A stretch of 63,993 nt of DNA, filler included, from Octopus bimaculoides (GCF_001194135.2; 7 parts of 7 records of this genome joined end to end with filler, not necessarily neighbours in it); one strand, 5' to 3'; positions 776-50,170 are shown, numbered from the whole stretch's first letter. Numbers and translations are program-made. The notes: generated from the sequence alone by a model not told the origin.

Positions 776-800
776 CTTGACAAGCAATATAACGTTGGTT
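776..800 (-). CDS. RPTP exon: PTP motif 4 (NQRYIACQG)
   Basis: YIAxQG motif; acceptor tttgttttgtttcag, donor gtatgt; 25 nt, phase 0-1. I found no GP..T..DFW exon in 1-775, so the gene continues outside the window. Confidence 0.88.
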
Positions 801-1499
801 CTGAAACAAAACAAAGTTAATTTTAAAAGTTATCAACATGTCATTCATTCAATTATTAAATATCAAACAACGAAATACATAATTTTATTCACTAAATTTT
901 AATGGTCATTGTTTTTCATAGTTTTTGTTATAGTAAATCTTAGTTTAAGATTATTGTTACTGTAACTCATCTACAATGAGATTGCCCATGGAGGGTTATA
1001 AAATAAACACAGTAAATCCAAAGTAACAGTCGTCATTTATAATACTCTCCTAACTTTATATTTACAAATTATTCAGTTTACCTGGAAATAAATGAGTGTT
1101 ACTTTCCATTGTGAATAGCTGTAGATGTATTTGTTGATGTTATTATTGTAGTAGATGCCTTTCTTTTATCTTTTACATGTTTCAGCCAATAGACTACGGC
1201 CAGGCTGAGGCACTGCCTTGAGTTTTGTTTCAGTGGAATGAACCAACCCCAGTCTTTCTTTTTAAGCCTGGTACATATTCTATTGGTCTCTTTTACCGAA
1301 CCGCAAATTTACGAGTACGCAAACAACACCAATATCAGTTGCCGAGCGGTGGTGGGGGACAAACACAGACATAAACAAACACTCACACATACATACATGC
1401 ATACATACATGCATACATACATAAACACATACACGTACATACATATATAAACACACACACAAACATACATATTGTGTACATACATACGTACACACACAC

Positions 1500-1573
<74 letters not shown>

Positions 1574-1606
1574 NNNNNNNNNNNNNNNNNNNNNNNNNNN
1601 NNNNNN

Positions 1607-1641
<35 letters not shown>

Positions 1642-4600
1642 CATATACAGTTCTCGACGCCACATGGTACAAACCGAAGATGAGAAGCCGAAGAATTTAA
1701 CCTAATCCAAAAGAACTCTTTCAGTAGAAATTAATATTTTCTCAAAAGGCCCAAGATTTACCCCAATACCGCAGCACTCTAACACGAATGAAATGCGGAA
1801 CGATATTTCACAGTTCTGTAGAAAATTATGCACAACAGAGGAAGTGTACGATAAAGAAAACAGGGACAAATGAATTGCAAGAAACAAGAGCGATTACAAA
1901 ACTACGAAAGGTAATAAAAACTTGGGATAAATTTTGTGATTTTATATCTACCTCCCCTTACAAAGAACTTCCACGCCCTAAAATCAAGCCCAATACAACT
2001 CGAAAGGAATGGGATATTTTACATGAACTGAAAAACAATAACGGCATTATAATTAAAGATGCAGATAAGGAAAGTGCTATAGTTATTATGGATATTGAAC
2101 TACAAGATATTACCCACTACAAGAATGGTAAATCATTGCCAAAAATCGAAGACAATGACTAAACTGAACAAACTCATCTACATACATCAAAAAGGTTTAA
2201 CTAACAAAGAATGTAATTACCTAATCCATTTTGATTGCAAGACTAGCTACTTCTACGCTCTCCCAAAATTCCATAAGAAACCAGCTATTAAGAATGCATG
2301 AAACAGCTTGAAGTTGAATAAACACAAAAGTTGAATAAACATAAAAGTTGAATAAACATACACCGACCCTTAATTGAGACCAATCGTAGCAGGCTCGAAC
2401 TGTGAAACACACAGACTCAGCAAAGTTATCGGTACATTACTGAAACCTTTTCTAAAATACATACCAAGTCTTGTAAGAGACGACCTGGACCTGTTATAAC
2501 CACCCCCAAAATCCATAAACAATGATACCATTATTGTATCTTTTGATACGGTAAACCTATATATCACAATCCCACAGCAATATGGACTAGAGGGAATGAA
2601 TACCTGGCTGAAGAAATTCTCTTAGGAAATTCCAGGCAGAATTGAAAAATGGTTCACCACTGAAGGATTAAAATTTATCCTCGAAAACAACTATTTTGTC
2701 CTCGATAGCAATATTTGCAAATATCTGGGACTGCGAAGGGGACAAAAATTGATCCGACGTACACCAATCTAGTCATGGCATACATGGAGATCCAGATATA
2801 TGAACAATCTAAATTAAGATATAGCTCGAACTTCCACAAGCATCTATTAGAAAACTGGAATCTCTATAAAAAATAGGGCAAGCTTCAAACACTAATCAGA
2901 AGCAAAACAGTTGTGAAATAAGCCGTCTTTCCATTTCAAGTGTTTAAAAATCAGTGTAAACTGTGAGACTGAGCCCGGATTCCTATGGTTCAGGGGGAAG
3001 CTTCTCACCAAACAGCCACGCCGACGCCTATGTTTGTTATATTTTTTTACTGATCAAATTCTTTTATTCTTCTAATTTTCTTCCTCTCTACTGCTAAGAG
3101 AATGACAAACACTTTTCTGTGAATTTGCGAAACCATACTCCATATTACGTACAAAGTAGGTTATGAGATAATAGGATAAACATTCTGTTACTTTCATAAA
3201 GCTACAGAATGACTTTAAAACATTTATATAGGGAAGAGATTCAAAGCAAGATGACCTTAGATTATACAGATCAACATCATCCTCATATTCCTTTGTTAAA
3301 ATAAGTTATGGTAACTTATAGGAGGGTACAATGAAATGTTTTTGACGTACACAGATGAAGTTTGCATTGATGTAATCTGAGGAAGAAATCTCGTCAGGTT
3401 GAAGTTTCACACGTGAATGATCGTCTGAAATATGCAACGAAAAATTATGTATATGTTAGCAAGATATTAGTTACATCAGCATAAAATAGAATCTATAAAG
3501 ATATCTAAAACTAAAACAATAAATATTGCTTAAATCATACAAAGCGTTTGAACAAGTGATATTTGATAAAAAGAAAATAAATACAATAAACATTAGATGA
3601 CTGTTAAACAAGCTTTTTGAATTGTTTCTATGCTTGGTAATACCAAGGTAAAGGGGGAAGCAGGTGAATTTGTAAAAACGAGAACATAAAAAGAAATAAT
3701 AGATTAAGATAACATTCCAAATCTTGCATAATTTAAATCATTCAGTAGAAATATAATTAGTTATCGGTGGATAAAATATTAGGGATAATCAATAATAAAT
3801 TATGGGACTTTAATCAGCCAGTAAATTACATTAAAAAAAAAATAGACTTTACTGAAAAAAAGTAAAAACTGTTGAATTCCAGCAGTTCACATTTCTTTGA
3901 ACTCAATATTATCACAAAATTGAATCCCTTTTAGACTAAGGTAGAATCTATTGAGTAATACCATGGCATTATTTGTTCAATATAATCTGGGTGCAAGATT
4001 TTATAATTGTTTTAAAAAGGCTAGCACCTTTGGAGGTGCATTTTATTTCAAGGACTCACCAAGCATAAATCTCCCAATTCATGGAGGTTACAAAAGTATT
4101 TAATAGAAGCATTTAAATGTGTTTGTAGGTATTTCTCATTTATCCACTTTCACTTTCACTTTCTGTCGCTGTTATCATAACGCTATATCTATTTCTCTGC
4201 ATATCATTACTTACCAGCTTTACTAGGTGCTTAAATTGATTAAACAAGTGAAAATATACAAATGAGGTAGTCTAGATTAGGTGATTTACTTCGAACATAG
4301 AAATATTACATAAACCTTTCTACTGAAGGCACAAGGCCTTGAAATTTTGCGGGAGGGGACTAGTCGATACATCAATTCCAGTGTTTCACTGGTATTTAAT
4401 TTATCGATCCCGAAGGATGAAAGACAAAGTCAACCACGGCGGAATTTGAACTCAGAACGTAGCGGCGACGGGCAAAATACCGCTAACTATTTCGTCCGAT
4501 GCAATGATTCTGCCTTAGAAGTGTTACATAATGGAAGAGATTTGTTGATTTTTTTTTTTTTCAAAAATTTTTCTTTCATTCTTCAAGTGTTTCGAAATAT

Positions 4601-5895
4601 TTCCCGTTAAAATTATTATGATTTCTCGTCAATGTTCACCACAAGTCTCTGTATCAATTCCGTTATTGTTAGAAAGAGGAATATTTGCTGAGTTGGAAGG
4701 AAAGCTACATTTTCAGGACATAACAAAGGCATACATTTTATTTAATTTGTTTTCAATTGTATAGCGAATACGAGGCTTTACAATATATGAAAGAAATCAG
4801 TATTTACATGGAAGTATAGTTTTATACTGATTCTTCTTTGCATTCTCAGGTTTCATTGCTTCATTATAAGGCATTGGTAAGAGTTTTGGCAGCCTCTGTG
4901 AATATAGAAAAATGAGAGCCGCACAATGTTAGCAATAACATAAATAACAAGACTAAATTACAGAAGATGGTTCATAAATAACGTTATCATTAGTGATACA
5001 TTATTACGAATCTAGTAACAGTAATTAAAAAATACACTACTCACAATATAATTAGCTAAAAGTTACTAACGATATACTTAGCGACACAATGGTCTTTGAT
5101 CTGGGCACAAGAGCAGCATTTTTGTTGGGAGTGGATAAGTCGATACTCTAGCTCCCAATATTTGATTGTTATTTTATTTTATAGTCTCCGAAAAGATCAA
5201 AGATGATCGCTGTGAGATTTGAACTCAGAACGTAAAGAGTTCGATGAAATAACGCAAATCAGTTTTATTCAACTCTCTAATGATTCTTCCAGCTCACCGT
5301 TAATGTCTAACAGTAGTGATACGTTTAGTAAGAAAGTACTAAAAGGCATATTATTAACAATACAGTAAATAATATAGTCCTATCAACACAACACTAAAAA
5401 TATAATTAGTGAAAACAAAGTATACTTTGTGAAACATATTAACAATGCATCAAATGATTCTATACTAATGATGTACTAATGATGGAATAACTATAAAATG
5501 GTTTTCGATTGAACAAAAACTGTTAAAATATTCATGAAAGACAGTCTCTGACCTGGAATTCCTTATTAAATGGTTCCGCTTCCTGTTTTTTATGAGCAAC
5601 ATATTTCAGTAGATTTTGCTTAAATGAAGAACTAGACAAGATGATGCATATACTTTCTCTTTCGTCCAACGATATTTCTCCAGAGAGATGTGCTATAATA
5701 AATGATAATAAATACTAATAAGAAAGAATTGCGCAAATATTCTAATATAAATACTTATAAATAAGTAGAAATACACACTCTTGCACACACATACACACTT
5801 TGACACACACTTAAAGTCTCATCTATATGTGTGTGTGTGTGTATGTGTGCATGTGTGTGTATTTGTGTGTGTGTGTATTTGTGTGTATTTGCATG

Positions 5896-5967
<72 letters not shown>

Positions 5968-8900
5968 ACAAAGCCCGCATTTATGAAAAGCTTTTTCCGA
6001 TTCAAATTCCCGTTTTAAAATATGAAATTACAGCCGCATTTCGCTTTTATGTTTTAATTTCTTTGTTTTTCAATCTGTTTTATTAATTTCTTTTCTTATT
6101 CTGCACTCAAGGTAATTCTGCTTCTCTGCATTGTGCTCTATGTGTTAGGTAATAACTGTGATTCTGTGATTCTTCTAACGAAGCATTGTACAACATTTAC
6201 TTATTTCCAATTCCTTACCTATTATGTTTCCTTTTCTCAGCATACTAGACATAGCAGCTATATTTCTATCAAATTAATATACTTCGGAGATCTAAAACAT
6301 TTCATTTCCCTAAGTAATTGTCATAACAACATAAAGTTATTGTTGGTAGAATACTTTTGTTTAAATAATATTATTATTCATCGTCATTCTAACATAGTTA
6401 CAACATGGGATATCTCCCAACTTTCCCTACAAATATTTTTGATATGCATATTTGAAAATAAAATTATCCTTGTCTTTATAAAGAAAAAGAATACATAAGT
6501 TTTCAGTCATTCAATAACTAGCTCGTAATAATGGAAAATCATTTAAAAATATTATTATCCCGATTTATATTATTCATCATCAATATACAATTGGAAAAAA
6601 AAAACGATAAAATATTCTAAGTTTTCGTTTAGCCTTTCTCAATAGCAATTAAAAGTATTCAGCAACTTGTGAATTCGGTGAGAGAGGTAGGAATGTTGGC
6701 TTAAAAGATTTTGGAGGTAAAAGCCACAAAATATTAAATATATGGGTTCATGATACGAGAAGATTTTCATTTCCTTCGTTACTCATAGTGAAATGTTTGC
6801 CAAAACTGAAGAAGCTTGCATTTAATGAATCAGTAGGTACTGTTACCAGTGTCAGAGTTGGAGCTGTTTGGGTTTAATATTGTCATTTATATCTTTCTGT
6901 TCAATATCTTACTCGAACAGCAGTACGTTTGCTTCAGCGACGACCGTTGATGTTTAATAAATTTTTAACAAGAATGACAGATCTACCGCAATTCTCCGAA
7001 TAACTCAAGTTAATATATACAATAAACGCATAATGAATACCCACGATACATTACAATGTTATTATACACGTCGTCATTAACTGAGTATGATCACCCTTTG
7101 AAGAACTGTAGCCTCAGTTTTTTTTTTATATATGTCAATATTTTTGGTTCGCAAACATCCTACAGAAACCCAATTCTTTTTGCTTGGCATGTGGAATATG
7201 TAGCGAAAGCATTGTTGAAGAAACAGTGCTAGTTAATAAACCTACCTGTATCTCCAGAAATGCCTTCTGAATATATATTTCCCGATACTTTGCGCATTCT
7301 CACATCACGTTTTACAACTGGCCTTTTTTTCCTACTAAAATATAGAAATATTTCATGAACTACTAGTGTGTAATTACCAATGTGATTCTCTGATTAAAAC
7401 AAACAAAGAATATTATACAGTTACTAGTAACGTAAAAAGTATTATTAATATTGATACACCACACGTAAGTTTATGTTAATAAATTAAAATAATTAAAAAG
7501 TGAACACCAAAGTCTTCACTTTCACACAGCAAACCAGTTGCGTTACTTATAGTTTAATACTCTTTTATTTATTTCAGAAATTTTACGAGTGAAATATTGC
7601 CAACACAAGAATATTCATTTCTCCATGATTAGATTCTGATCCTATGTGGAATATCGTTATTTTAAACATTATTAAATACATAGAGTGGCCTAACTTCCTT
7701 GTTGTCATTATTTTCAATGATATACGTTCAGAATTTATTCAGTTACCAATAGATATGAGTTGACTTTTCATCGCTGCCAGGTTAATAAAAAAATAAACGT
7801 TAAATAAACCTATCTTAGTTGTGGAAACGCTTCTTACTCGCTACACCTATGCCATGTCCGGTTATATTACGGTACCAATGTAACAAACCATAATTATTAA
7901 TGATATGTGTCAAGATTGTAAGGCGGCGAACAAGTAGAATCGTTGGTAGGCCGGGCATTCTGTCTGTCTTTACGTTCTAAGTTCAAATTCCACCAAAGTC
8001 GAGTTTGTCTTTCATTCTTTCGGGGTCGATGAAATAAGTAGCAGTTATTAATGGAGTCGATGTAGTTGAGCCACCCTTACTCAGAACCTGCTGGCATGTG
8101 CCAACATTCGAAACCAATATGTGTCAAGATTTTACCTATAAACACGCACACGCGAGCAGACAAATATGTGTCCTTAAAGCTTCCTGTTTAACATCTTACA
8201 TACGTTTCACGGTCCTTCATAAGCCACCTAGCTGCCCAATTTAAAACTTACCCAAAATACATCGTATGATTTTGTAAAGATACCTCATGATATTTATTAT
8301 TATTATTATTGAGAGAATAATTGTAACACGATTCATTAAATGTGCGTGAATCACGAGACATATCTATTAAAAAGGTTTTGTAACAGGAGAAAATATTACA
8401 AATGGAAATATCTGAGAGCAGGGATATTATATACTTAACCACTGTGCTTCTACTGTGTTAGAAAGTCGTTTGACTAAGTACCATATCCATAAAGGAGAGG
8501 AAATGGTAGATGAAACTTTTATACAGAGGAGAGGCAACTTATCTGAAATAACATCTAACCTCTATTTTCAGTTATATTCGCTGAAAGAAATGCTTTATTC
8601 CATGATATACTTTAAACACTTGCATTCTACACCAATAAATATTTTCTTGACTGTTGAAATGATTAAAATAAGCAGTATTGATTTCACTATATCAATATTA
8701 TTCAGCCCTCATCATATATATTTCCTCGCTTCATATTCCTGAAATACTAATATTAGAATTCAAATTACGACAAACGTAAATAAACAAACGAAGTTTGCTT
8801 TTTAGAAGCGTTGAGATGTCTTAGAAAGTTAAAGAAGTGATTTTAAATTCTCAAAGCGAGATTTATATATCTTAAATGTGCAGAGGAATTTGTAGTGGGT

Positions 8901-9658
8901 AGTTTAGCTTAATCCGTCAAAGCATCGTGACGCGTAATCACGGGGATGTGAGTTCGTGTCCACAGCTAGCCACCTACACTTTTCTCTGCAAAATAGGGGT
9001 AGTTCATCCTGTTCAGGCTATGTTATTAGCATTATTCTGCGATTGAGAATTTAAAATCACTTCTTTAACTTACTAATATTAGATATTAGCGTTGTTGGCA
9101 ACGCCGAGGAATGGGTCTAATAAGTTTGTAATTTTGTATCGCAACTATCTGTGTTGAAATGTCACCAAAGCAAAGTTTACTTTCATCCTACCAAAGTTAA
9201 CAAATAAAATACTATTTTAAAAAATATATTTGCGTCAAATTGGCAATTTGAAACTGCTCAATCTATTGGTATAATTGTAACCGCGAACATTAATTTAGAA
9301 TTTAAAGTAATAACAGGGCAGTTAGTGCGATTAATGTTATCATAAAGAGTAATAACGAATACACCGAAATTGGGGTGGGAAATATTGTATATTTATAAGG
9401 ATCAGATTGTATGGATTATGGATTAATAGCAATTACTATTCAGATAGTAAGGACACTAACCCAAAATTTGGTGTTCATTCAATCAAATTATTCACATTAA
9501 AAAATAAAATAATACAAAAACAAAATACATATTCACTTACCAATACCAAATTGCAACCGCCATTACCATGATTAGGACGATCAACAGAATCAATGGAACT
9601 ATCATAGAAACCAGGTTATTCTCTGTTTTTTCTGGAAATTAAAAAATGTATTGTTTAT

Positions 9659-9695
<37 letters not shown>

Positions 9696-12220
9696 CATAC
9701 GCCTACCTGTGCATATGTGTGTGTGCGTGTGTTTGTGTGAAAAATAACGTTTAGACTTTCCAAAAAGAATTTTAAATAATGCTCATGACAAATTAAATAG
9801 GGTTGGTAATGGTAATATCCTTAAATTATTGTGGCTATGGATATGTGTAGCAACTGATGTAAAAAAAGATTTGCAAGAAAATCTAATAATCGCTCAATAA
9901 TATTATTGAGTAAGAGATTAGTAGTTTATCTAACCTTTGCATCTCTTGGAAGTATTGTCCCAGTCATATCCCGTGATGCAACCTTCCTCACAATGTCCCG
10001 TGACTTGATCACATTTAGAACCTACACACAATTCACAACGTTCCATACACATATCTCCATAGAATCCAGGAACACATTCTGCAATAACAAAAATGAAAAA
10101 AAAAAAGAATATTATGGTAACTATGTATTTCACTAACGTTAGTATCTAATATTCAGTTGCAATAATATTTCATAGAATGATTACGGTTTAAATTTAATAA
10201 TTGGAGTGTCTCTTCATGTCAATGGCACATCAAATATTACATGTATAATTATATAAACTGATGACTATGAATCTACAACATCTGCATTCAGTTCATCATT
10301 ATAACGCCGGACAAAATGCGTAATGGCATATTGTCCGTCTTTACGTTTTGAGTACAAATTCCGGCGGGGTCAATTTTTACTTTTCGGAGAGAAAAAATAA
10401 GTGCCGGCCAAACAGTGGGGTTGATGTAATTGACTAGACCCCTACCCCAAAATTTTAGTTCTTGAAGAAAAAAGTACAGAGTAATGTTTTAATGACCTGA
10501 AAAATTAAGCGCACATACATGATTCGAATATTTTGTATACACGTCATCTTTGCGAATCATTGGAAAATGAAATGAGTGGCTGAATGTTCGTGAGTATGTA
10601 ATAATATATATTTCTGCGTTGGGCAATGAAATATTAGTGTAGTTAACACTTTGATGTTAATAAGATCAAACATGTTTGGTAAAATAAATTTGCAGTAATA
10701 TAAAATATAAATAATTATAATGAATCAAGAGTAGACAAACTAACTTTAATACCTTTTGTATTAAAGGTAGTTTTGTGGAATTATTTATTGACAAAAAATT
10801 ATTAATAAACAGAAATATATAAAGAAATAAAAGCACACCTCAATTCTCTATAGTTATGGATTTTCTAAGGGTTCCAGTTGATCAGATCAACGGAACAGCC
10901 TACTCGTGAAATTAATGTACAAGTGGCTGAGCACTCCACAGACACGTGCACCCTTAACGTAGTTCTCTGGGATATTCAGCGTGACACAGAGTGTGACAAG
11001 GCTGACCCTTTGAATTACAGGCACAACAGAAACAGGAAGTAAGAGTGAGAGAAAGTTGTGGTGAAAGAGTACAGCAGGGTTCGCCACCATCCTCTGCCGG
11101 AGCCGCGTGGAGCTTTAGGTGTTTTCGTTCAATAACACTCACAACGCCCGGTCTGGGAATCGAAACCGCGATCCTATGACCGCGAGTCCGCTGCCATAAC
11201 CACTGGGCCATTGTGCCTCCACTGTAACAGAAGAAAGTAATGGAAGTAATGAGACAGATTAAGCTCTGTTGAAATTTTTCTTTTCAAGAGAGAAATAAAG
11301 TTTCGATTTTCCAGAAGTTATTTCAAATAATGCTCATACCAAATTAAATAGAGTTGGTAACGGTGATATTCTTGAAATTTTGTGGCTCTGAATATTTGTT
11401 GGAACTGACATAAGAAAGGTTTGCAAGAAAATCTAACAATCCCTTAGTAAATTTTGTGTTTGAGCAGGAAAATAAAAGTTTATCTAACCTTTGCACTTCC
11501 TGAAAAAGTTGTCCCAGTAATATCCTGAAACGCAACCTTGCTCACATCCCGTGACTTGATCACATTTAGAATCTACACACAATTCACAACGTTCCATACA
11601 CATATCTCCATAGAATCCATGAACACATTCTGCAATAACAAAAACGATAAAAAAAGATATCGCGGTAACTGTATGTATTTCTCTAACGTTAATATCTAAT
11701 ATTCAGTTGTAATAATATTTTATAGAATGATTATAATTTATATTTAATAACTGGCGTGTCTCCTCATGTCAATGATACATCAAATATTACATGTATAATT
11801 ATATAAAATGATGACTATAAATCCTAAACACCTGCGTTCAGTTAATCGTTTGCACGCCGGACAAAAAGCTTAGTGGCATGTCGTCCGTCTTTACGTTCTG
11901 AGATTAAATTGCGGTGGGGTCGATTTTTACCTTTCGGGGTGAAATGATAACTGCCGGTCAAACTATGGGGTTGATGTAATTTACTAGACCCCTCCTGCAA
12001 AATTTCAGGCCTTGAAAGAGAACATAAGTAATCTTTTTAACGACCTCAAAAATTAACATAACCATACAAGAGTCGAATATTTGAATACGCGTCATCTTTC
12101 CAAATCATAGAAAATGGAATAAGATAAGTGAGTGAATGTGCTTACGTAATGATATATGAATATATGCATAAACACATACATACGTACATATGTATATACA
12201 TCCATACATACATATGTATA

Positions 12221-12252
<32 letters not shown>

Positions 12253-12443
12253 CATACATATACATACATACATATATATATATATAATCTCCTCATATAT
12301 ATGTAATAATCCTTTCTTCTACTATTACCGTCTCCGATGAAGGGATACATTGAATTTTCCCTGAAACAGCTGTAATACTTTCTACATAAAATATAAATTT
12401 ACTTATGCCATTGGTCTCTTTATCTCATTCTTTTATACACACA

Positions 12444-12499
<56 letters not shown>

Positions 12500-15400
12500 G
12501 GGAGAATTCACAAAAAAANNNNNNNNNNNNNNNNNNNNNNNNNNNNNNNNNNNNNNNNNNNNNNNNNNNNNNNNNNNNNNNNNACATATATATATATAGG
12601 GAGAATTCACAAAAAAACAACAGACGAAGACAGGTGGTGAAGAAAACAAATAGATGTATTAGTATAACGCTCGGGAATTGAAAAAGTCTTTAACGTTTCG
12701 AGCCTACGCTCTTCCACAGAAAGGAGCACAGAAAGAAACAAGGAGAGAAAAAAATGTGTGTAGTGGTTAGCGATCTATATATATAATAAACCAGAGAAAT
12801 GTTTATGTTTATCATAATTAGGTTTATCCACATTCCAGTCAATACCAGTGGGATGTTTTGGGGAAGCTGAGTGACTTTGTTCATTACAGAGTTCTCGACT
12901 ATAGGTAAGCAGTATGTCAGTATAATTGGCAAATGTTTGCTTATCTTGTAATACTGAATTGAAATCGTTTCAGTTAAGTGGAGATGGATATTCTCTCTCC
13001 ACACTCAATAGCGTTAATAACTTATTAATCGATACCATTCTTATAAATCAATATTTTTAAAGTGAAATAACAAATATACATAACCTACGTAATACTTCCA
13101 CTTCACATAGGGTAAGCTGTCTCTCACTTCCTTCTAACGATATTTTGACATTACTTGAACTTACTGGTTTTTCACATTTAACATGAATTACTTGTTCGTT
13201 ATGTTCATGATGTCTACTTTCAAAACAAAGAGAAGATCCAAGATAAACTTTAAATCCTCTCAGCCTGAGACCTAGAATCAAAATATGAGAGTAAAACTGA
13301 AATCAGATGTTAGTTATATTGAGAATAATTTCAAAAGATCACCTTGCGAAAGGTTTCCCTTTCTTATAATTTGTCTAGTGTTAGTAAATATGTATGGAGG
13401 TATGTATAGATGTGTGTAAAAAATATATGCTTGTGTGTATATATGTAAATTCATGATGGAGTAGGCTCTGTACACTTAGTGCTTTGCTTAGGTATTTATT
13501 TCCATTTTCATTTATTTGCTTCTTTTTATGGTTCGCTATATTCAACGTTGAAATGTATTGATTTGTAAAAATCATATTAGTTATACACTGTTCGGTTAAT
13601 TAGAAACTATAGCAACTTCTCTAAGATCGGGAACATAAAATATAAGGAACAAAGTTTTTTGAGGGTGAGCTCAAAAGTTCATAAGCTAACTATGAAGGAG
13701 TGATGTTAGAGCTATGAAATCTTGCATACATTAATTTCAACACATCTTATTTATAACTGCATTATTTCATTCCAGGTAAGCTGATACTTGACTGTTCAAA
13801 GAAGACTTCAAATGTAACTGATAGCAATAGCAGATATGACATCATCATCACTGTGACACTGGTTCCCAGACAAATGTTTTTTCATGTTGGGGAATAGATG
13901 AAGATCAGATGGATCAAATCGGGAGAATGGGGAGGGTGATCAAACAGTTCAAAGCTACAGTCGTACACAACAGTCACTGAAACTAAGGAGTTGTTCGCTT
14001 GAGCATTGTCCTGTTGAAACAACTCCACTTTTGACAGATCAGATTTTCTTCGCATTTATTCTTAATAGCCTTTCATAACTGCTTCAGCATGTTGGCATAG
14101 TACTCTTCATTGATAGTGGGGCCTCTTTGAAAAATAATAAATAAATACTATGCCTTTTGCCTTCCCAAAACTGAGGCCCTTACCTTCCTAGCAGATATAA
14201 CAACCTAAGCTTTCTTTGGAGCAGGGGGCGTGATGTTTCTACTACATGGATTGTCTATTTGTCTCTGGCTCAGTGTGACTAACCCAACACTCATCTTGGG
14301 TTAGGATACATCGAAGGAAACTAGCTGCACCTGCCTCATACATTGTCAGATGATCCCGTGTTGTGATCAACCCGGGGCGCCATTCTGATTCCTCCGACAT
14401 GTCGGAGAAATCAAAATGGCCCGAATTACTCGAGCTCGAAAGGATGTGTGAGACCTTTCAACAACACTTTGCCCGACGACTTTTTGGTGCAACTGTTTCT
14501 GCTGTAACATTCTATCAAAAACAATGTAATCTTAATAAATAGATAAAATTTCCTCATTTAATAATGATTCAGTCATAAAAATAGACGCAACATTCATCAA
14601 AATCCATACAATCTAGTAATGCACGAGCCATTAGGGATATTACAGATATCAAAGAATGTTTGTTAGATGGATCCGATCTCCTTAGTTCATAGTCACAATA
14701 TTATCAAAGCGATACGAGTTTCTACCATTCTGAAGTCAAAATAGAGAGCATACTAAAGTTATTTCCATTGTCATAGAATCAGTGGTGGAGAGAAAACACA
14801 TATGTGATACGAATCAATTGATCCTCTAACTGGCCACTGGAAAATTTAAAAACAGCAGCGTCAACATCTCCGTCCAGTCACACATCACTGTCTTAAAAAT
14901 GATAGGATGGTCACGGCCGGAAATCCTTTGAACAGAGAGGTCTAGTTAATCAGGACTTATTCAAACTGAGTAACAGCAATAAGGAAAGTAGTAGTTCTAG
15001 CAATACTTACGGTCTTTCATTCGATTGTATATTCTCAGTTGAGATATCACGTATGGTTCATCAAACGTCACTTGCCAGTGTAACTCAGTACCTATTTTAG
15101 TTTGTGCACATGATTTATGTAGGAATGCAGGGTCAAAATTACCGTCAACCGCCTTGTCGGATGTCATTTGTAGTTCCGTGGTCTTACATGATCCATTGTC
15201 GAAAACGTATGCATTTTTTCCATATCCTGCTTGATTTGTTCGTTTACCTTGAGCAATATTGACTGAAAAAAGATTGACGCCTGAATTAATATTCAGTACA
15301 AAGTTTTTATTCAAACACCGCTAAGGACTTCGCAGTAACTGACGACAACAATCAAGAATAAAATGTTCACATAAACAGCAAACCTGACATGATCCACAGA

Positions 15401-16698
15401 ACTCTCTGATCTAGAGATGCTCCTAATATTATACTTCTCTGCTCTACCATCTTCCGTCCTCACATAGAATACTGTTATGCGTTCTGTTCTCTCTATACGA
15501 AAGTAAGTATAAAAATTAAAGCACTCCAGAGATCAATCAAAGAAAAAGCAAGGTTTTGACTTCTGGGATCGGATCGCGAAATTCAAACTTTATTCCCCAC
15601 AACGCCGCCGTGAGTGCTATATCATTTGTATAATGTGGAAAATAGTCCAACATGTTGGCATCAACTTTAGAATTCAACCTAGACTTGGCCCCAATGCCAT
15701 CTGTTCTCTACAAAACTTGCTCTCGCGTCACATTACAACACTGAGACAGAACCATTTTGCTCAACTGGCCCCGCTCTATTTAACATCAATCCGAGACACA
15801 TAAAGGAAGAAAATAATCTCAACATTCAAATGTTTCCGGAATAAATAACCTCAAGAAATTCCAGATAAACAACTACACTCGGATGTATCCCTGCAAACAA
15901 TAACTCTTTTTGTCGCATGGGCTATGATGCCCAAAGCATGACTGTAACATACATGAAGCATGAATAAATGTTTTCTAGGGTGCTGCTTTTGGCATGGATA
16001 AATTCTGGTCGAACGCTACCTAAGTATCTAAGTATCCCCATACCCTGAACAAATATGTACTCACCATATGTTTTCTTGTCACACTTCTCTCCATGCCATC
16101 CATCTTCGCAGCCATTTTTACAGAACCCAGATATTTGGTGACATGATTCCCCTCGAGAACAATGACATTCATTTGTACAGTTTTCTCCGTACAATTCTGG
16201 TGGACATCCTAAATTGGTAATATCGAAACAATTTCTTTTTAAATGTGCATGAAAATAAAACATTTATTGAATATAAAACCGAATCTTCCAAAATCTCTCA
16301 AATATTTCTTGAAAATTTATTCAATGACAAGTCGTTTAGATGAACAAACTAGTCTTTCTGTAAGACGTTGTCTAGTGAAAAGTCGCTTTCTTATAAAACT
16401 GATTCCATTAAAAGATTGTTTCGATGAAAAGATGTGTGATAAATTGTTGTACGATAAAATGTTTTGGTATCACTTATTACATATGAAATGAAATAACAGA
16501 AATAAATTGGAAGAAACAATTGAAAATCGCTATTAATACGAGATGTAAACATACCATGTAATGTAATACGATAAACTTTTGCCTTCCCGTTGATATACAA
16601 GTCTCTAGCCATCACATCACCAGTGCAAATTATCTTATTTCCATCTGAGTTTAGTTTGCAGTCCATTCCAATCGGATACGTAATCTTCATTGTTGCAT
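776..16698 (-). CDS. Partial multi-exon receptor-type protein tyrosine phosphatase with lectin (FTP/discoidin-like) and EGF-like ectodomain; 5' and 3' incomplete
   Basis: Exons 16555-16698, 16065-16208, 15011-15262, 13089-13271, 11489-11629, 9935-10078, 9541-9631, 7246-7334, 5553-5692, 4808-4895, 3351-3424, 776-800 all have AG/GT ends and matching phases, and join into one open frame with EGF cysteines, [12 protein letters not shown], a TM helix and PTP motifs KNQY, DHSRVKL, DYINANF, YIACQG. Confidence 0.92.
1170..1350 (+). mobile_element. Interspersed repeat family D (TTTTACTTGTTTCAG..CTGCGGCCATGCTGGAGCACCGCC), decayed copy
   Basis: Visibly similar to copies at 22218-22370, 40535-40705, 53030-53200 and 59200-59375 (minus). 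Confidence 0.65.
1697..2870 (+). mobile_element. Decayed Penelope-like element reverse transcriptase, antisense in an RPTP intron
   Basis: Across frameshifts and stops: [92 protein letters not shown]. Confidence 0.88.
3351..3424 (-). CDS. RPTP exon: PTP motifs 2-3 ([25 protein letters not shown])
   Basis: DHSRV.L and DYINAN motifs; acceptor catatttcag, donor gtacgt; 74 nt, phase 1-0. Confidence 0.95.
4330..4515 (-). mobile_element. SINE-like family A (GGCGGCGAGCTGGCAGAA..GAGTTCAAATTCC..GGGGTCGAT)
   Basis: Reverse complement matches copies at 45663 and 55882; B-box-like GAGTTCAAATTCC. A more decayed copy lies at about 5100-5300. Confidence 0.75.
4808..4895 (-). CDS. RPTP exon: PTP motif 1 ([30 protein letters not shown])
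   Basis: Acceptor tattcacag, donor gtaaat; 88 nt, phase 0-1; KNxY..ILPY motif. Confidence 0.92.
5553..5692 (-). CDS. RPTP exon: pre-catalytic region (...[20 protein letters not shown])
   Basis: F..EF motif before the PTP domain; donor gtcaga, phase 0. Acceptor tattatag at 5692 fits phase 1, but the 5' edge is uncertain. Confidence 0.78.
7246..7334 (-). CDS. RPTP exon: basic stop-transfer and juxtamembrane segment ([30 protein letters not shown])
   Basis: Acceptor tatattttag, donor gtaggt; 89 nt, phase 2-1. RKKR follows the TM helix when spliced directly. Confidence 0.85.
7918..8116 (+). mobile_element. SINE-like family A copy with 15-bp target-site duplication
   Basis: ATATGTGTCAAGATT at 7903-7917 and 8117-8131 flanks the element. 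Confidence 0.85.
8897..8972 (+). pseudogene. Degenerate tRNA-like sequence (tRNA pseudogene or SINE head), nominal anticodon CGT
   Basis: CGTGA/TCACG stem around 7-nt loop cgcgtaa, partial T-arm gtgag-ttcg-ccac, partial acceptor pairing with gctagcc; several conserved bases lost. Confidence 0.45.
9541..9631 (-). CDS. RPTP exon: transmembrane helix ([30 protein letters not shown])
   Basis: About 22 hydrophobic residues; acceptor aatttccag, donor gtaagt; 91 nt, phase 1-2. Confidence 0.92.
9935..10078 (-). CDS. RPTP exon: EGF-like module, duplicate copy B ([47 protein letters not shown])
   Basis: Acceptor ttattgcag, donor gttaga; 144 nt, phase 1-1, 8 Cys. Confidence 0.9.
10868..11222 (-). mobile_element. 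tRNA-derived SINE family B (GTGGAGGCGCAATGGCCCAGTGGTTAG...), 3' truncated
   Basis: Near-identical to 20719-21002 and 46346-46737; A-box and B-box-like motifs. Confidence 0.9.
11489..11629 (-). CDS. RPTP exon: EGF-like module, duplicate copy A ([46 protein letters not shown])
   Basis: Acceptor ttattgcag, donor gttaga; 141 nt, phase 1-1, open, 8 Cys. Not in the ORF track. Whether it is constitutive or alternative is unknown. Confidence 0.82.
12330..12378 (+). ncRNA. Degenerate minimal type I hammerhead-ribozyme-like motif
   Basis: CCGATGA-AGGGA..TCCCT-GAAA-C-AGCT-GTA: core has U4 to C, 5-bp helix II, palindromic stem III loop; stem I imperfect. Confidence 0.55.
12688..12723 (-). ncRNA. Second degenerate minimal hammerhead-like motif
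   Basis: Minus strand CTTT-CTGTGGA-A-GAGC-GTAG-GCTC-GAAA-CGTT-AAAG: 4-bp stems I and II; core has A6 to U and one extra A. Confidence 0.4.
13089..13271 (-). CDS. RPTP exon: C-half of F-type lectin/discoidin domain ([10 protein letters not shown]...LTLCEVEVL)
   Basis: LTLCEVEV end motif; acceptor ttttgattctag, donor gtaggt; 183 nt, phase 1-1. Confidence 0.92.
13661..14340 (-). mobile_element. Mariner-type transposase 3' remnant with one TIR
   Basis: Minus-strand LFQQDNAQ and [10 protein letters not shown], then after a frameshift [16 protein letters not shown]; TIR-like gagggtgagctcaaaagtt at 13661. Confidence 0.8.
14810..14990 (+). repeat. Old interspersed repeat (..AATAGCAGC..GTCTTAAA..GGATGGTC..) with related copies at 37360-37570 and 63735-63940
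   Basis: Shared motif order seen by eye in three diverged copies; class unknown. Confidence 0.45.
15011..15262 (-). CDS. RPTP exon: N-half of F-type lectin/discoidin domain (VNIAQGK...AVDGN...CAQT...WQVTF...YNRMKD)
   Basis: NIA.GK, AVDG, C..T, W.V.F and I.NR motifs; acceptor ttttttcag, donor gtaagt; 252 nt, phase 1-1. Confidence 0.92.
16065..16208 (-). CDS. RPTP exon: EGF-like (MEGF/SREC-type) module [48 protein letters not shown]
   Basis: 8 cysteines with MEGF-like spacing; acceptor aatttag, donor gtgagt; 144 nt, phase 1-1. Confidence 0.93.
16555..16698 (-). CDS. RPTP exon: likely diverged C-terminal half of a galactose-binding-like domain ([49 protein letters not shown])
   Basis: Acceptor ttcccaccag, donor gtatgt, 144 nt, phase 1-1. 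Domain identity inferred from position before an EGF exon. Confidence 0.75.
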
Positions 16699-16752
16699 CT
16701 GGTGGGAAGAGTATATACATAAAAATAGGAGATTTATACCTGTAAATGTGTG

Positions 16753-16801
<49 letters not shown>

Positions 16802-16820
16802 GTATGTATATGTATATATA

Positions 16821-17080
16821 CAGGGGTTGGACAATATAATGTAAACACCAAGTATCATAGCATCATAATTTTGAAATATCTATAAAACTGTCAAAAACTT
16901 GTTTATTTTTATGTTTTTTGATTTATTATTAGTATTGCTTAATATGTTTTGCTAAAATTGATTGCTTTTTCTCTTCGGATGTCATCAGAAAAAGGTAATT
17001 AAAATTCATTAAAATGACAGATCTATCGGACTTTCAAAGAGGTCAAATTGTTGGTGCTCGTGTGGCAGGCGCTAGCATAT
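16821..17080 (+). mobile_element. Tc1-family transposon 5' end, cut by spacer
   Basis: TA then CAGGGGTTGGACAA TIR-like start; ATG at 17014 reads MTDLSDFQRGQIVGARVAGASI (Tc1 HTH). Confidence 0.82.
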
Positions 17081-30278: not shown

Positions 30279-30412
<134 letters not shown>

Positions 30413-31342
30413 TGCATATATATTAATAGTCTCCACGAAGCATTATCTCATATATGTGTTGTTTGTTCCTTCTCGAGCCATACCAGTGGAGACTGAAAAT
30501 TGAAACATGCATTATAATATTGGATGTCTTGGGAATGATTAAAAAAAAAAGAAATTGATAAATGCATATGCAAAAGACCGGAACTTGCAAATATGTACAA
30601 TATGTAGAATTTACTGCTATTGGGCGCTGCATACTTATAATACATAGTGTATTTCCTATGCAATGCAAAGCAAAGCACAATATGTGCCCAAGGCGACAAA
30701 GCTGTGCTTGGTGGTACACTGAAAGCATGCAATAAAAATAAGACTACTGAATGATAATGATAATTATCATTATACTAATAATTAGCGTTTATTAATGAGG
30801 GAAATCATTTCAGTGATCTTACCACCAACATACATTATTAATGTTAGCAATAATAATGGCACTGCTTGTTTTCACAGAACCAAGCATTGTAGTAATTATG
30901 ATTATGCACATCAAGGTGGACTTGTGACACTAATTTCAACCCGAGTTCTAAAATTTGTGAACATTGTTTTAGTTATTATTATTTTTTTTAATTATGTCTT
31001 CTTTAGATGACAACATTCCTCTTACCGAGCTAGTTAATTGATACAAATTGTAACCATTCTTTCTAAATTATTCACTATAGAAATCTTTGTTTAATCCTTT
31101 GTGTTTCTCGCTGCTTTGTCTTGGATTTTTTTTCTTTTGGACTTTTCAAATTTAAACGAATTCACTGTTTCAGCTGTCATAGTGAGTGATATGTGTATTT
31201 CTTGCAAAAATTAAGCTAAACAATAGGAAAGTAATAGCACTCTTAGAAAGTTATTGGAATTTATACTTTAAGATTATTTGACTTTATTCAGTTCAGTGCT
31301 TGAGCCTTGCCTTATAGTAACGTCGGAGCTTGGAATGTTGGC

Positions 31343-32573: not shown

Positions 32574-34140
32574 GAAGGCGGAGGCAGCGGAGACGGCGGA
32601 GGCGGCGGCGGCGGCAGATAGTCGCACGACCAACGCTACAAACACATTAGAAGTGCGAGAGGTAGTAAATGATCTCGAGGAGATTGGAGGAAACATGGAG
32701 CTGCTCCAGAAGGAATGAGAAAGCCTGCGACTGACCTTTCCAGAGGAAGTAACCAATAGTACTAGGAGAAGGACAGTGGTATACAGAACGCTGTCCTTAT
32801 CCAGCAAGAAAATTGAGATAGCGACGGACGAGGCTATTGAAAAATGCCTAGAAAATGTGAAAAGTGAAACCACCTACTGCACCAGAGGAAGGAAGTATGA
32901 CACAGTGGAGGTGAGATTTTGCCACGGAAGAAGGAGCAATCAATCACTCCACTGTACCTCTGAGATAACAGGAATGGGTGCTCCTGCCAACCTACTGCGG
33001 CAAAAGAGTCGCGAGAATCAGGGTTGGTAGGGTACCGCCAGAAATAGAGGAAACATGGTTAATAGCAGCCATAACTTATGAAACGGAAGAAATAAAAATA
33101 TTGCAATTCACAAGAACTAAGAAGCTGAATTTGTGGGGTTATGGACTAGAAGTGGTGGTCCAAGACAGCCAAGAAGAATTGAATGTGATAACGGAAAAAA
33201 TACTGCTGCCGGAGGATAAGAAATTAAGAGTAGTAGTGGAGGGTCGTCCATCCACCTGCTACCACTGAGGTGTGAAGGGGCACATGAAAGCAAAGTCCCC
33301 CCAGCTAAATAATGAAATAACTGAAAACCAAAGTTAACCAGAGAGAAGTACCGAGACAACAGCCCCAATCATGGAAGAAAATACGGAAGACACAGACGAA
33401 GAGAGATTCATTGAAGTTCCAAAAAGAAAGAGAGGTGTGGCTGCAGGGTCACCCCCCGAAAACTACTAAAAAGAAAAAGAAAAACATTAACATTGAAGAC
33501 GACACACAAACATTAAACAGACTAGACACACTCACACAGCATAAACCACAAGTAGAAACACCAAAATGTAGTGATACCACCTCGGTTAACTCCAGCACCC
33601 CATGTAGTAATACAGACCTAAATGCAGACAGACAAAAGACACAGACCCACAAAATACCTCGAAAACACAAGGCTCACATTATGACATACGCCAAAAGCAC
33701 GGCAATCGAACGCATGATTATCAAGATTAAGTCGGTAATCAGAATGAGATTGCCGTCTGAGGCGAAACCGGAATATAATTGACAGTGAAAAATGCACAAA
33801 ATTAAAAGAAACATTTGGTTCACTCATTGACACGTTAGAAGAGGAGGTAGAATACGATACTCTGCTTCCGATCGTGGATTACGAAGACATAATACAGTAC
33901 CTGAACTAGAAAATACAGTAAAATTTTAAATGATAAAAATTTGATTAAAAAAAACTGAAAATAAAAACAGTTAAATGTAACCACCTGAGAGTGGGGCTCG
34001 AGTGGCCATTTCATCTTCATTTTTATATAATTTCACCTTTCATCCGTTTCATGTTTTTGTCCTTACTTGCATTGTTCTGTCTGTCCTTGTGCCATCCACT
34101 CTGCGTTTCGGGCTTTTGTGCCTAATAAAGAATTAGCTTA
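32574..34140 (+). mobile_element. Decayed gag-like ORF1 with CCHC knuckle, probably from a non-LTR element; no ORF2 seen
   Basis: RVVVEGRPSTCYH*GVKGHMKAKSP restores CX2CX4HX4C with two single-base changes; stops and frameshifts; AATAAA at 34124. Clade is inferred. Confidence 0.65.
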
Positions 34141-34504
34141 TAAAGACAGACGTTACAGAAGAGATATCGGAATTACGTGCTGGTGAAGGTGAATTGATAG
34201 TTGTTTAAGGATTATACCAGAAGTCCGTAATCACAATAAAACATAACATTTTTTTATAGAAGGAGTATGGGATTGTGCGCTGTAACAGCACATAACTGCA
34301 TCCACCATTTGCTAATGATTTTCGCCTTCTCCCGGTAGATGACGCCTTTGCTCCACACAGGTGACAATCCTCCAGCCCATAGGTCTGATTGGGTAGTCGT
34401 TGCTGGTGAAGATTTTACGAGGTCGGAATAAAAACCCTACTTCCAACTCTTTTAATCGCCTTTCCCGACACATAGAGGAAACGTTGGGTCTATTCTTTAG
34501 CATT

Positions 34505-49828: not shown

Positions 49829-49876
<48 letters not shown>

Positions 49877-50170
49877 TATATACATATATACATACATATA
49901 TATTTCTTTGTACGTCTCTTCACCTCTCTTCATACTTCTCTCCACTCCCACTTCTCTTCACCCCTACTCTTTCTCTCCTCTCTCTTACTCTCTCTCACTC
50001 TCTTCTCTCGTACTCCCCCCTCTCTCACTCTTACTCTCTACACTCTTACTCTCCTACTCTCTACACTCTTNNNNNNNNNNNNNNNNNNNNNNNNNNNNNN
50101 NNNNNNNNNNNNNNTTAATTAATTAANNNNNNNNNNNNNNNNNNNNNNNNNNNNNNNNNNNNNNNNNNNN

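Follow-up and report, generated by a model that had tools for sequence, protein, structure and literature searches.

The ectodomains of human receptor protein tyrosine phosphatases (RPTPs) use Ig, FN3, MAM, carbonic-anhydrase-like and similar modules. The 'fucolectin-related molecule' of Littorina littorea (AJA37903.1, P0057) carries in one chain an F-type lectin (FTP) domain of family PF22633, an EGF domain, a transmembrane (TM) helix and two protein tyrosine phosphatase (PTP) domains (Y_phosphatase), and is presumably mRNA-derived, from a haemocyte transcriptome. Gorbushin and Borisova reportedly named this family FLReM in 2015 and discussed it as a candidate immune receptor. A passage of PMC5712786 that cites their work (Gorbushin and Borisova, 2015) presents the diversified FTL repertoire of Littorina, as a hypothesis, as an immune defence system. 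Here, we describe a gene from Octopus bimaculoides (GCF_001194135.2) that is read on the minus strand from position 16698 to 776 of the window, which is the whole stretch of DNA that was analysed (63,993 nucleotides, filler included). The window gene likely adds a cephalopod member to a family of FTP-EGF receptor phosphatases that is known from lophotrochozoans and has received little study, and the stretch that encodes it is a genuine gene fragment that was read correctly.

Exon structure and public gene models

The window DNA is AT-rich (30-39% GC) and of animal type. It contains no long open reading frames (ORFs), and pieces of PTP, EGF and F-type-lectin domains are recognisable in open segments of the minus strand. 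Based on base-by-base inspection of the splice junctions, the gene consists of 12 minus-strand exons in the window, all with an AG acceptor and a GT donor. Coordinates are those of the whole window:

Exon A: 16698-16555, minus strand, 144 nt, phase 1-1; C-terminal half of an N-terminal domain of about 98 aa
Exon B: 16208-16065, minus strand, 144 nt, phase 1-1; one eight-cysteine EGF-like repeat of the laminin/MEGF type
Exon C: 15262-15011, minus strand, 252 nt, phase 1-1; N-terminal half of the FTP domain
Exon D: 13271-13089, minus strand, 183 nt, phase 1-1; C-terminal half of the FTP domain
Exon E: 11629-11489, minus strand, 141 nt, phase 1-1; duplicated EGF repeat, one codon short
Exon F: 10078-9935, minus strand, 144 nt, phase 1-1; membrane-proximal EGF repeat
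Exon G: 9631-9541, minus strand, 91 nt, phase 1 to 2; TM helix, from a hydrophobicity scan
Exon H: 7334-7246, minus strand, 89 nt, phase 2 to 1; basic stop-transfer segment and tail, ending ..GDT
Exon I: 5692-5553, minus strand, 140 nt, phase 1 to 0; juxtamembrane segment before the PTP domain
Exon J: 4895-4808, minus strand, 88 nt, phase 0 to 1; start of the PTP domain, with KNQY as a variant of the KNRY motif
Exon K: 3424-3351, minus strand, 74 nt, phase 1 to 0; PTP motifs DHSRV and DYINANF
Exon L: 800-776, minus strand, 25 nt, phase 0 to 1; PTP motif YIACQG, the last exon of the gene inside the window

Spliced together, exons A-L give 1515 nt, or 505 codons free of stops. The exon set of the original prediction is correct down to its end coordinates, as the splice sites are canonical and the 505-codon frame is open. 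The 505-aa product it proposed is likewise confirmed by 100% identity, over the shared part, to the O. bimaculoides protein XP_052834032.1 (P0001; 540 aa, 'multiple EGF-like domains protein 10'), for which PF00102 is precomputed. The product is also 57-60% identical (BLASTP) to paralogues in other Octopus species, and the match is therefore far beyond chance. Where 12 junctions had been counted, there are 11 internal to the window and an open junction at each end of the exon set. The proposed domain order stands as well: half of a beta-sandwich domain (A), EGF, FTP (C and D), EGF, EGF, TM, juxtamembrane segment and PTP, with the N-terminal third of the PTP domain in exons J-L, where its classical N-terminal motifs are present. 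The description of the gene as invisible in the ORF track is true, merely because an ORF list of the bacterial style cannot display a spliced animal gene.

Exons A-F all have lengths divisible by three and both start and end in phase 1, in line with the phase 1-1 pattern proposed for the six ectodomain exons. Modular extracellular proteins that arose by exon shuffling typically show such phase 1-1 exons (Patthy); their presence here is to be expected and does not set this gene apart. The further claim that any of these exons could be skipped or swapped holds arithmetically and fails at the level of domains, since half a domain is all that exon A, C or D encodes. The only self-contained ectodomain modules are B, E and F singly, and C and D as a pair.

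The gene is not new to public annotation. In addition to XP_052834032.1, the same cluster at 90% identity contains UniProt A0A0L8G1J5 (P0024; 505 aa), which agrees with the spliced product save for a few residues at each end, its TM/tail splice (W for C-R) and intron read-through after exon L, an older NCBI model of 689 aa (P0023), and a 139-aa 'protein-tyrosine-phosphatase' made of the catalytic exons alone. XP_052834032.1 is a chimera of two tandem copies: it splices exon L of the first copy to an exon of the second copy about 24 kb away (49871-50037 of locus sequence L001), then reads through into an intron (..GKVRFKK*), and it lacks the 5' exons and the signal peptide. Model P0023 uses positions 433-621 of the window, minus strand (DRSTCFSFFTYGVIWSNGEPRFRRSEKPSILWTRK), as a bridging exon to the catalytic exons; this segment has no PTP similarity and looks like filler for an exon lost in a gap. 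NCBI uses the name MEGF10 for this gene and its paralogues; for the window gene it is wrong. Counts of octopus receptor phosphatases or lectins taken from the current models would be wrong too, with a wrong name, a chimera and both gene ends missing.

The link between ectodomain and phosphatase domain

The fusion of a lectin-type ectodomain to a PTP domain is very likely real for the family, judging from sequence comparison, and likely real for this particular gene. In the window, TM exon G lies between the ectodomain and PTP exons with phase-compatible junctions, and the donor of exon H (CAG|GTAGGT) and the acceptor of exon I match in phase 1. The O. vulgaris models P0169 and P0171 splice FTP, EGF, TM, basic tail and PTP in this order, and P0169 continues through WPDHGIP and VHCSAGVGRTG into a degenerate second PTP domain. 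The O. sinensis model P0014 likewise contains the tail-to-PTP splice. When 1.84 billion representatives were searched exhaustively with HMMER, many proteins were retrieved that align in one stretch from EGF through TM to PTP, and a word-index search with the cytoplasmic part returned only 4 matches. The FTP domain is N-terminal to the PTP domain in 55 of 177 retrieved proteins, with a TM segment between the two in most.

Members with the order FTP-EGF-TM-PTP occur in Haliotis, Littorina, Physella, Bulinus, Plakobranchus, Liolophura (a chiton), Sinanodonta and Potamilus (unionid bivalves), Lingula (a brachiopod) and Lineus (a nemertean). By all appearances in these sequences, the architecture is real and widespread across molluscs, with a brachiopod and a nemertean. 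The single-pass receptor with a classical PTP tail that had been proposed for the window therefore holds, as full-length relatives with the same order are found in O. vulgaris and many lophotrochozoans.

A competing explanation is that the window contains two separate genes, i.e., a short-tail FTP-EGF-TM receptor that ends at exon H and an independent downstream PTP gene or gene fragment, which the gene predictors and the original prediction had fused. Several observations weigh against a single fused gene. Short-tail paralogues without a PTP domain exist (P0018, P0005 and P0006), the tails of P0002 and P0018 are homologous to exon H, and in the O. sinensis locus L003, which is free of gaps, the 10 kb downstream of P0018 contain no PTP exon. 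If the donor of exon H is not used, the frame stops 5 codons later (after GRFIN), and exon H could in principle be a terminal exon. However, the H donor and the I acceptor match in phase, and juxtamembrane exon I has neither a start codon context nor an upstream exon of its own. The three public models are all computational and conflict at the 3' end (a copy-2 exon in P0001, filler in P0023), yet the same tail-to-PTP splice recurs in the O. sinensis model P0014 and in the O. vulgaris models P0169 and P0171. Moreover, FTP, TM and PTP are combined in a single chain in AJA37903.1 and in dozens of proteins from lophotrochozoans, and EGF and PTP exons were duplicated jointly in the second tandem copy. 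Two separate genes are thus highly improbable.

A further complication for the fused gene comes from O. sinensis locus L002 (VCDQ01002555.1), where the EGF-TM-tail-PTP exon order is conserved and the TM-to-tail junction is one base out of frame in a run of T. There (L002 8890-9000 and 10024-10130), the TM exon ends in ATTGGTATTG, compared with ATTTGGTATTG in O. bimaculoides. This difference may be a homopolymer error of long-read sequencing or a real frameshift. With the tail exon out of frame, NCBI therefore modelled only a 178-aa cytoplasmic fragment at this locus.

Tandem cluster, exon duplication and catalytic residues

On CM046630.1, the window is flanked by two large N gaps, and it probably holds the middle 17 kb of one minus-strand O. 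bimaculoides gene. Three 5' exons outside the window (L001 4185-4265, 5998-6156 and 7546-7692) encode a Cys-rich N-terminus and, in the last of them, the first half of the domain that exon A completes. At least three members of the family, this gene among them, form a tandem cluster, which is incompletely assembled, with 5' and catalytic exons beyond N gaps; gaps lie at L001 8208-9610 and 26691-28541, and the stretch at 33-50 kb is fragmented. The second tandem copy, located 3' of the window gene (L001 34474-54740), has the same exon order, and its exons share about 80-96% amino-acid identity with those of the window gene. Its EGF exon is at 34474, its juxtamembrane and PTP exons are at 42.7-50.0 kb, its WPD exon with an intact PDHNIP is at 53.4-53.7 kb, and its P-loop reads HC-SDGVGRTG (Ala to Asp) at 54.6 kb of L001. 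One exon for a second PTP domain (D2) follows at L005 17151-17282. The third family gene, P0007 (NCBI 'fucolectin-5'; L005 10001-17264, CM046630.1 2914399-2921662), encodes EGF and FTP, keeps the fucose-site His, and is convergent to both PTP-bearing copies within about 70 kb. The modelled 3' end of P0007 overlaps the D2 exon of the second copy on the opposite strand. The upstream neighbour of the window gene is an adhesion G-protein-coupled receptor (L001 1-2741), in whose called product Pfam recognises GAIN_ADGRA3, GPS and 7tm_2.

Tandem duplication is also seen at the level of single exons. Exons E and F are carried by two copies of a unit of about 840 bp:

Duplication unit, upstream copy: 11290-12123, minus strand; carries exon E
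Duplication unit, downstream copy: 9739-10576, minus strand; carries exon F

The period is about 1551 bp (spacing of 1550-1554 in the repeat search), and the two copies are 82.4% identical over 846 columns (blastn), which bears out the earlier proposal that one ectodomain exon was duplicated. They are 89% identical in the exon, compared with 82% and 76% in the introns on either side. Between exons E and F there are 2 differences in the first 84 nt, and 13 differences plus a 3-nt deletion in the last 57 nt; counted by hand, about 12 of these 15 differences change the amino acid. The deletion in exon E removes the residue between Gly and the sixth Cys (TG-CEQGC versus TGHCEEGC), and all eight Cys are kept. 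Exon E is the diverged copy because exon F is nearer to the single EGF of paralogue P0002 (90% identity, versus 74% for exon E).

The catalytic exons of the gene lie outside the window, at L001 29207-29320 (MQYWP...), 30359-30553 (W-T-G-H-V-I-P...VIHC) and 32760-32900 (SAGVGRTG...MVQKR). The next PTP exon after exon L (..TVTDFWRMIWQ..) gave no match in positions 1-775 of the window and presumably sits in the 1.85-kb N gap at L001 26691-28541. The P-loop HCX5R is complete, with catalytic Cys and Arg kept, and is split over the last two catalytic exons (VIHC|SAGVGRTG). The WPD loop, on the other hand, reads W-T-G-H-V-I-P at the nucleotide level (TGG ACA GGT CAT GTC ATT CCA), with 3 replacements in 7 residues, among them the general-acid Asp, which is Gly in this copy. 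Relatives have WPDHG(V/I)P at this position. The loss of the Asp is recent, because the second tandem copy (PDHNIP) and O. vulgaris P0169 (WPDHGIP) retain it; a word-index homology search with the catalytic exons, aimed at conservation of WTG, returned one candidate and no match. Loss of the WPD Asp, as in mutants of the PTP1B D181A type, cuts turnover by orders of magnitude, and substrate binding remains. Judging from these residues, the copy would be at best a very slow or crippled enzyme or a phosphotyrosine-binding pseudophosphatase, or else a duplicate going to decay. The 'phosphatase output' that was originally proposed is doubtful for this copy.

The last of these options, that the window gene is a decaying tandem duplicate (a pseudogene or becoming one) and not a working receptor, deserves separate consideration, as part of the evidence runs counter to a functional gene. 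Besides the lost Asp, the segment resembling a Q-loop exon (AIDAIFYDLAIFRK, L001 ~33018-33056) has no in-phase AG acceptor and has Asp in place of its second Gln, and no D2 exon turned up ahead of the next gene copy. Both the Q-loop region and the sequence downstream contain many N gaps, however, and the absent exons may be unassembled. The P-loop HCSAGVGRTG is intact, and likewise the 12 of 12 window exons are open with intact canonical splice sites. On the side of decay, the model of P0171, the likely counterpart in O. vulgaris, lacks the WPD and P-loop exons. The codon that exon E has lost falls in the conserved G-x-C spacing and reads as a sign of decay, whereas the Cys of the three EGF repeats and of the FTP core are all kept, and exon identity in the E/F duplication exceeds intron identity. 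Decay is therefore an unlikely explanation, if one of some substance, and the window gene is better read as a member of the receptor phosphatase family that may have lost much of its catalytic activity.

Two assembly gaps fall in introns of the gene:

Assembly gap: 12519-12583, intron D-E; the same ~35 nt on both flanks (ACATATATATATATAGGGAGAATTCACAAAAAAA), one TA unit apart
Assembly gap: 1574-1606, intron K-L; within a (CA)n(TA)n microsatellite

The contig ends at 12519-12583 most likely overlap, with nothing missing, because the flanks share the same ~35 nt. In homologues, exon D leads directly into E/F and exon K directly into L with no additional residues, and therefore neither gap hides an exon or alters the frame. 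Both gaps fall in microsatellite tracts, and long (CA)n, (TA)n and (CATA)n microsatellites are found across the introns (640-760, 1380-1640, 5820-5980, 9640-9700, 12130-12510 and 16700-16860). In intron K-L, a frame-shifting run of ORFs on the plus strand (1788-2876) looks by eye like a decayed retroelement reverse transcriptase, and in intron C-D, open segments on the minus strand (13811-14557) resemble by eye the C-terminus of a frameshifted mariner-type transposase. The ORFs of neither region matched Pfam, piecewise or stitched. Rfam and tRNA scans of the window found nothing.

Ectodomain, family variation and comparison with known systems

Exons C and D together match Pfam PF22633 (F5_F8_type_C_2) with 29.1 bits against a cut-off of 27.8, and their best sequence matches in the PDB are F-type lectins, i.e., striped bass FBP32 (E=1.2e-15), the S. 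pneumoniae fucolectin-related protein and the eel agglutinin AAA. By sequence, the FTP domain is a true F-type lectin domain from which the canonical His is absent. In the alignment with FBP32, AAA and the S. pneumoniae protein, both Arg of the fucose-binding triad His...Arg...Arg align, and the His is replaced by Gln (SCAQT, exon C). Exon D carries the second conserved Arg of the fucose motif and ends in the conserved LTLCEVEV. The 'glycan recognition' of the original prediction is weakened by this replacement in the fucose-binding site. The same position has Gln in paralogue P0018, His in P0020 and P0007, and Ser in P0005 and P0006. Exon B has a weak Pfam match to EGF_STAB1-2.

The exon A domain was seen in Octopus and Argonauta proteins only. 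A Pfam search found nothing, and a profile comparison of the domain as a relative of FTP was not significant (hhalign probability 0.7%, E=0.08). Its AF2 model (pLDDT 68) gives weak Foldseek matches (E 0.03-0.5), consistently to beta-sandwiches of the CBM32, discoidin and F-lectin type. Exon A, which had been called a lectin-like half, is thus half of a small domain that is beta-sandwich-like according to the model, with no lectin match from Pfam or hhalign; 'lectin-like' describes a weak resemblance in predicted fold, and not a demonstrated lectin.

The original prediction further read the gene as a diversifying receptor for glycans that possibly serves immunity or self/non-self recognition and switches isoforms near the membrane. 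The location in a tandem cluster, the variable fucose-site residue (Gln, His or Ser) and the number of EGF repeats, which is 1 in P0171, P0018 and P0002, 2 after the FTP domain in the window gene and 7 in P0169, all point in this direction and fit a modest diversification of the family. The mostly nonsynonymous changes between exons E and F would agree with it as well, as would the immune role that the passage of PMC5712786 mentioned above hypothesises for the Littorina FTL repertoire. The cephalopod family is small, however, with only 13 clusters at 90% identity, and the ectodomain does not stand out as fast-evolving: EGF exon B shares 92-94% identity with paralogues P0018 and P0002, and divergence is greatest in the TM, tail and juxtamembrane exons (40-55% identity). 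Moreover, no second TM exon was found that could serve isoform switching. The sole candidate, a hydrophobic open segment at 9305-9415 (minus strand) just downstream of exon G, ends in a stop and has no AG acceptor anywhere upstream in its open frame; it is a chance product of an AT-rich intron. Rapid diversification in such a role is accordingly a rather improbable reading of the gene.

With the window gene taken as a cephalopod member of the FTP-EGF receptor phosphatase family, its origin and action may be pictured as follows. The ectodomain combines an FTP domain with EGF repeats of the laminin/MEGF type and, in cephalopods, also has the Cys-rich N-terminus and the small beta-sandwich domain; it may have been assembled through phase-1 exon shuffling. 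Tandem duplication of single phase 1-1 exons may have varied the number of EGF repeats among paralogues, and the E/F pair would represent one such event. The ectodomain may bind a glycan or protein ligand on another surface, and binding may alter the clustering of the cytoplasmic PTP domain or its access to phosphotyrosine substrates. A more far-reaching proposal is that FTP-EGF RPTPs form a lophotrochozoan-specific subtype outside R1-R8, which would couple recognition of fucosylated surfaces to phosphotyrosine signalling, with the octopus cluster diversifying via EGF-exon duplication, changes of the fucose-site His and, in this copy, an Asp-to-Gly conversion to substrate trapping. We consider the proposal as a whole rather improbable. 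In the library searched, no literature was found that describes FTP-EGF RPTPs as an RPTP subtype.

The closest relatives of the window gene, along with the Littorina fucolectin-related molecule, are four O. vulgaris models annotated as 'receptor-type tyrosine-protein phosphatase T-like' (CAI9733298-CAI9733301; P0169, P0025, P0171 and P0026), which belong to the same family and probably to the same tandem cluster. These genes have the same order of FTP, EGF, TM, basic tail exon, juxtamembrane and PTP, with 66-100% identity in the PTP exons of the window and 64-73% in the FTP/EGF exons, and lower values where a model covers an exon partly. P0169 differs from the window gene in its 7 EGF repeats, in its intact WPD loop, and in its degenerate second PTP domain, as no D2 was found for the window gene. 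P0171 has a single EGF repeat, and its model, like that of P0026 (CAI9733300 and CAI9733301), skips the equivalents of exon A, exon D and the WPD and P-loop exons and still remains in frame. Gene predictors can drop ectodomain exons without penalty because these exons are phase 1-1. Individual exons in models of this family are not to be relied upon.

The Littorina protein P0057 aligns to the 689-aa model with E=7.7e-59, and its domains are confirmed by Pfam. It differs from the window gene in its low identity in the FTP and EGF exons (25-38%), in having another N-terminal region without the cephalopod 98-aa domain, and in its two PTP domains. The soluble F-type lectins AAA (1K12), FBP32 (3CQO) and that of S. 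pneumoniae (2J1R/2J22) belong to the same domain family as the window FTP, and both triad Arg align. They have SCTHT where the window gene has SCAQT, and the CC pair that follows NRGD is absent in the window gene. In contrast to these lectins, the window FTP is membrane-tethered and fused to EGF and PTP domains.

MEGF10, MEGF11 and Draper resemble the window gene in being single-pass membrane receptors with eight-cysteine, laminin-type EGF repeats. MEGF10 has an N-terminal EMI domain, about 15-17 EGF repeats, a phagocytic tail of the NPxY/ITAM type and no PTP domain. Pfam finds no EMI domain in the window gene, which has three EGF repeats and both FTP and PTP domains. The name MEGF10 is a similarity artefact, as every defining feature except the EGF type fails. 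The window gene also resembles receptor pseudophosphatases, which keep the PTP fold and P-loop and have lost a catalytic residue (here, the WPD Asp, now Gly), and has no homology to them beyond the PTP domain. IA-2/PTPRN is a receptor pseudophosphatase. In PTPRU/PCP2, both PTP domains are inactive (PMC10815196).

Compared with the vertebrate RPTPs of subgroups R1-R8, the window gene encodes a similar single-pass type-I receptor with classical motifs of the first PTP domain (D1; KNRY, DYINA, YIAxQG and HCSAGxGRTG), and the D1-D2 tandem of vertebrate RPTPs is found in relatives of the window gene. NCBI names these relatives after PTPRT, PTPRK, PTPRM and PTPRE, and the names reflect similarity in the PTP domain only. 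EGF does not appear anywhere in a review of the eight human RPTP subgroups, and lectin comes up there only in an unrelated connection; with no EGF or lectin module among the subgroups in that review, the contrast with vertebrate ectodomains that was drawn at the outset holds. The window gene adds one member to a poorly studied lophotrochozoan class of RPTPs with lectin-type ectodomains. If this class were indeed one of glycan-gated phosphatases, the natural loss of the WPD loop in this copy could serve as a ready-made evolutionary experiment, and the class could usefully be compared with vertebrate RPTPs, most of whose ligands are proteins and proteoglycans.

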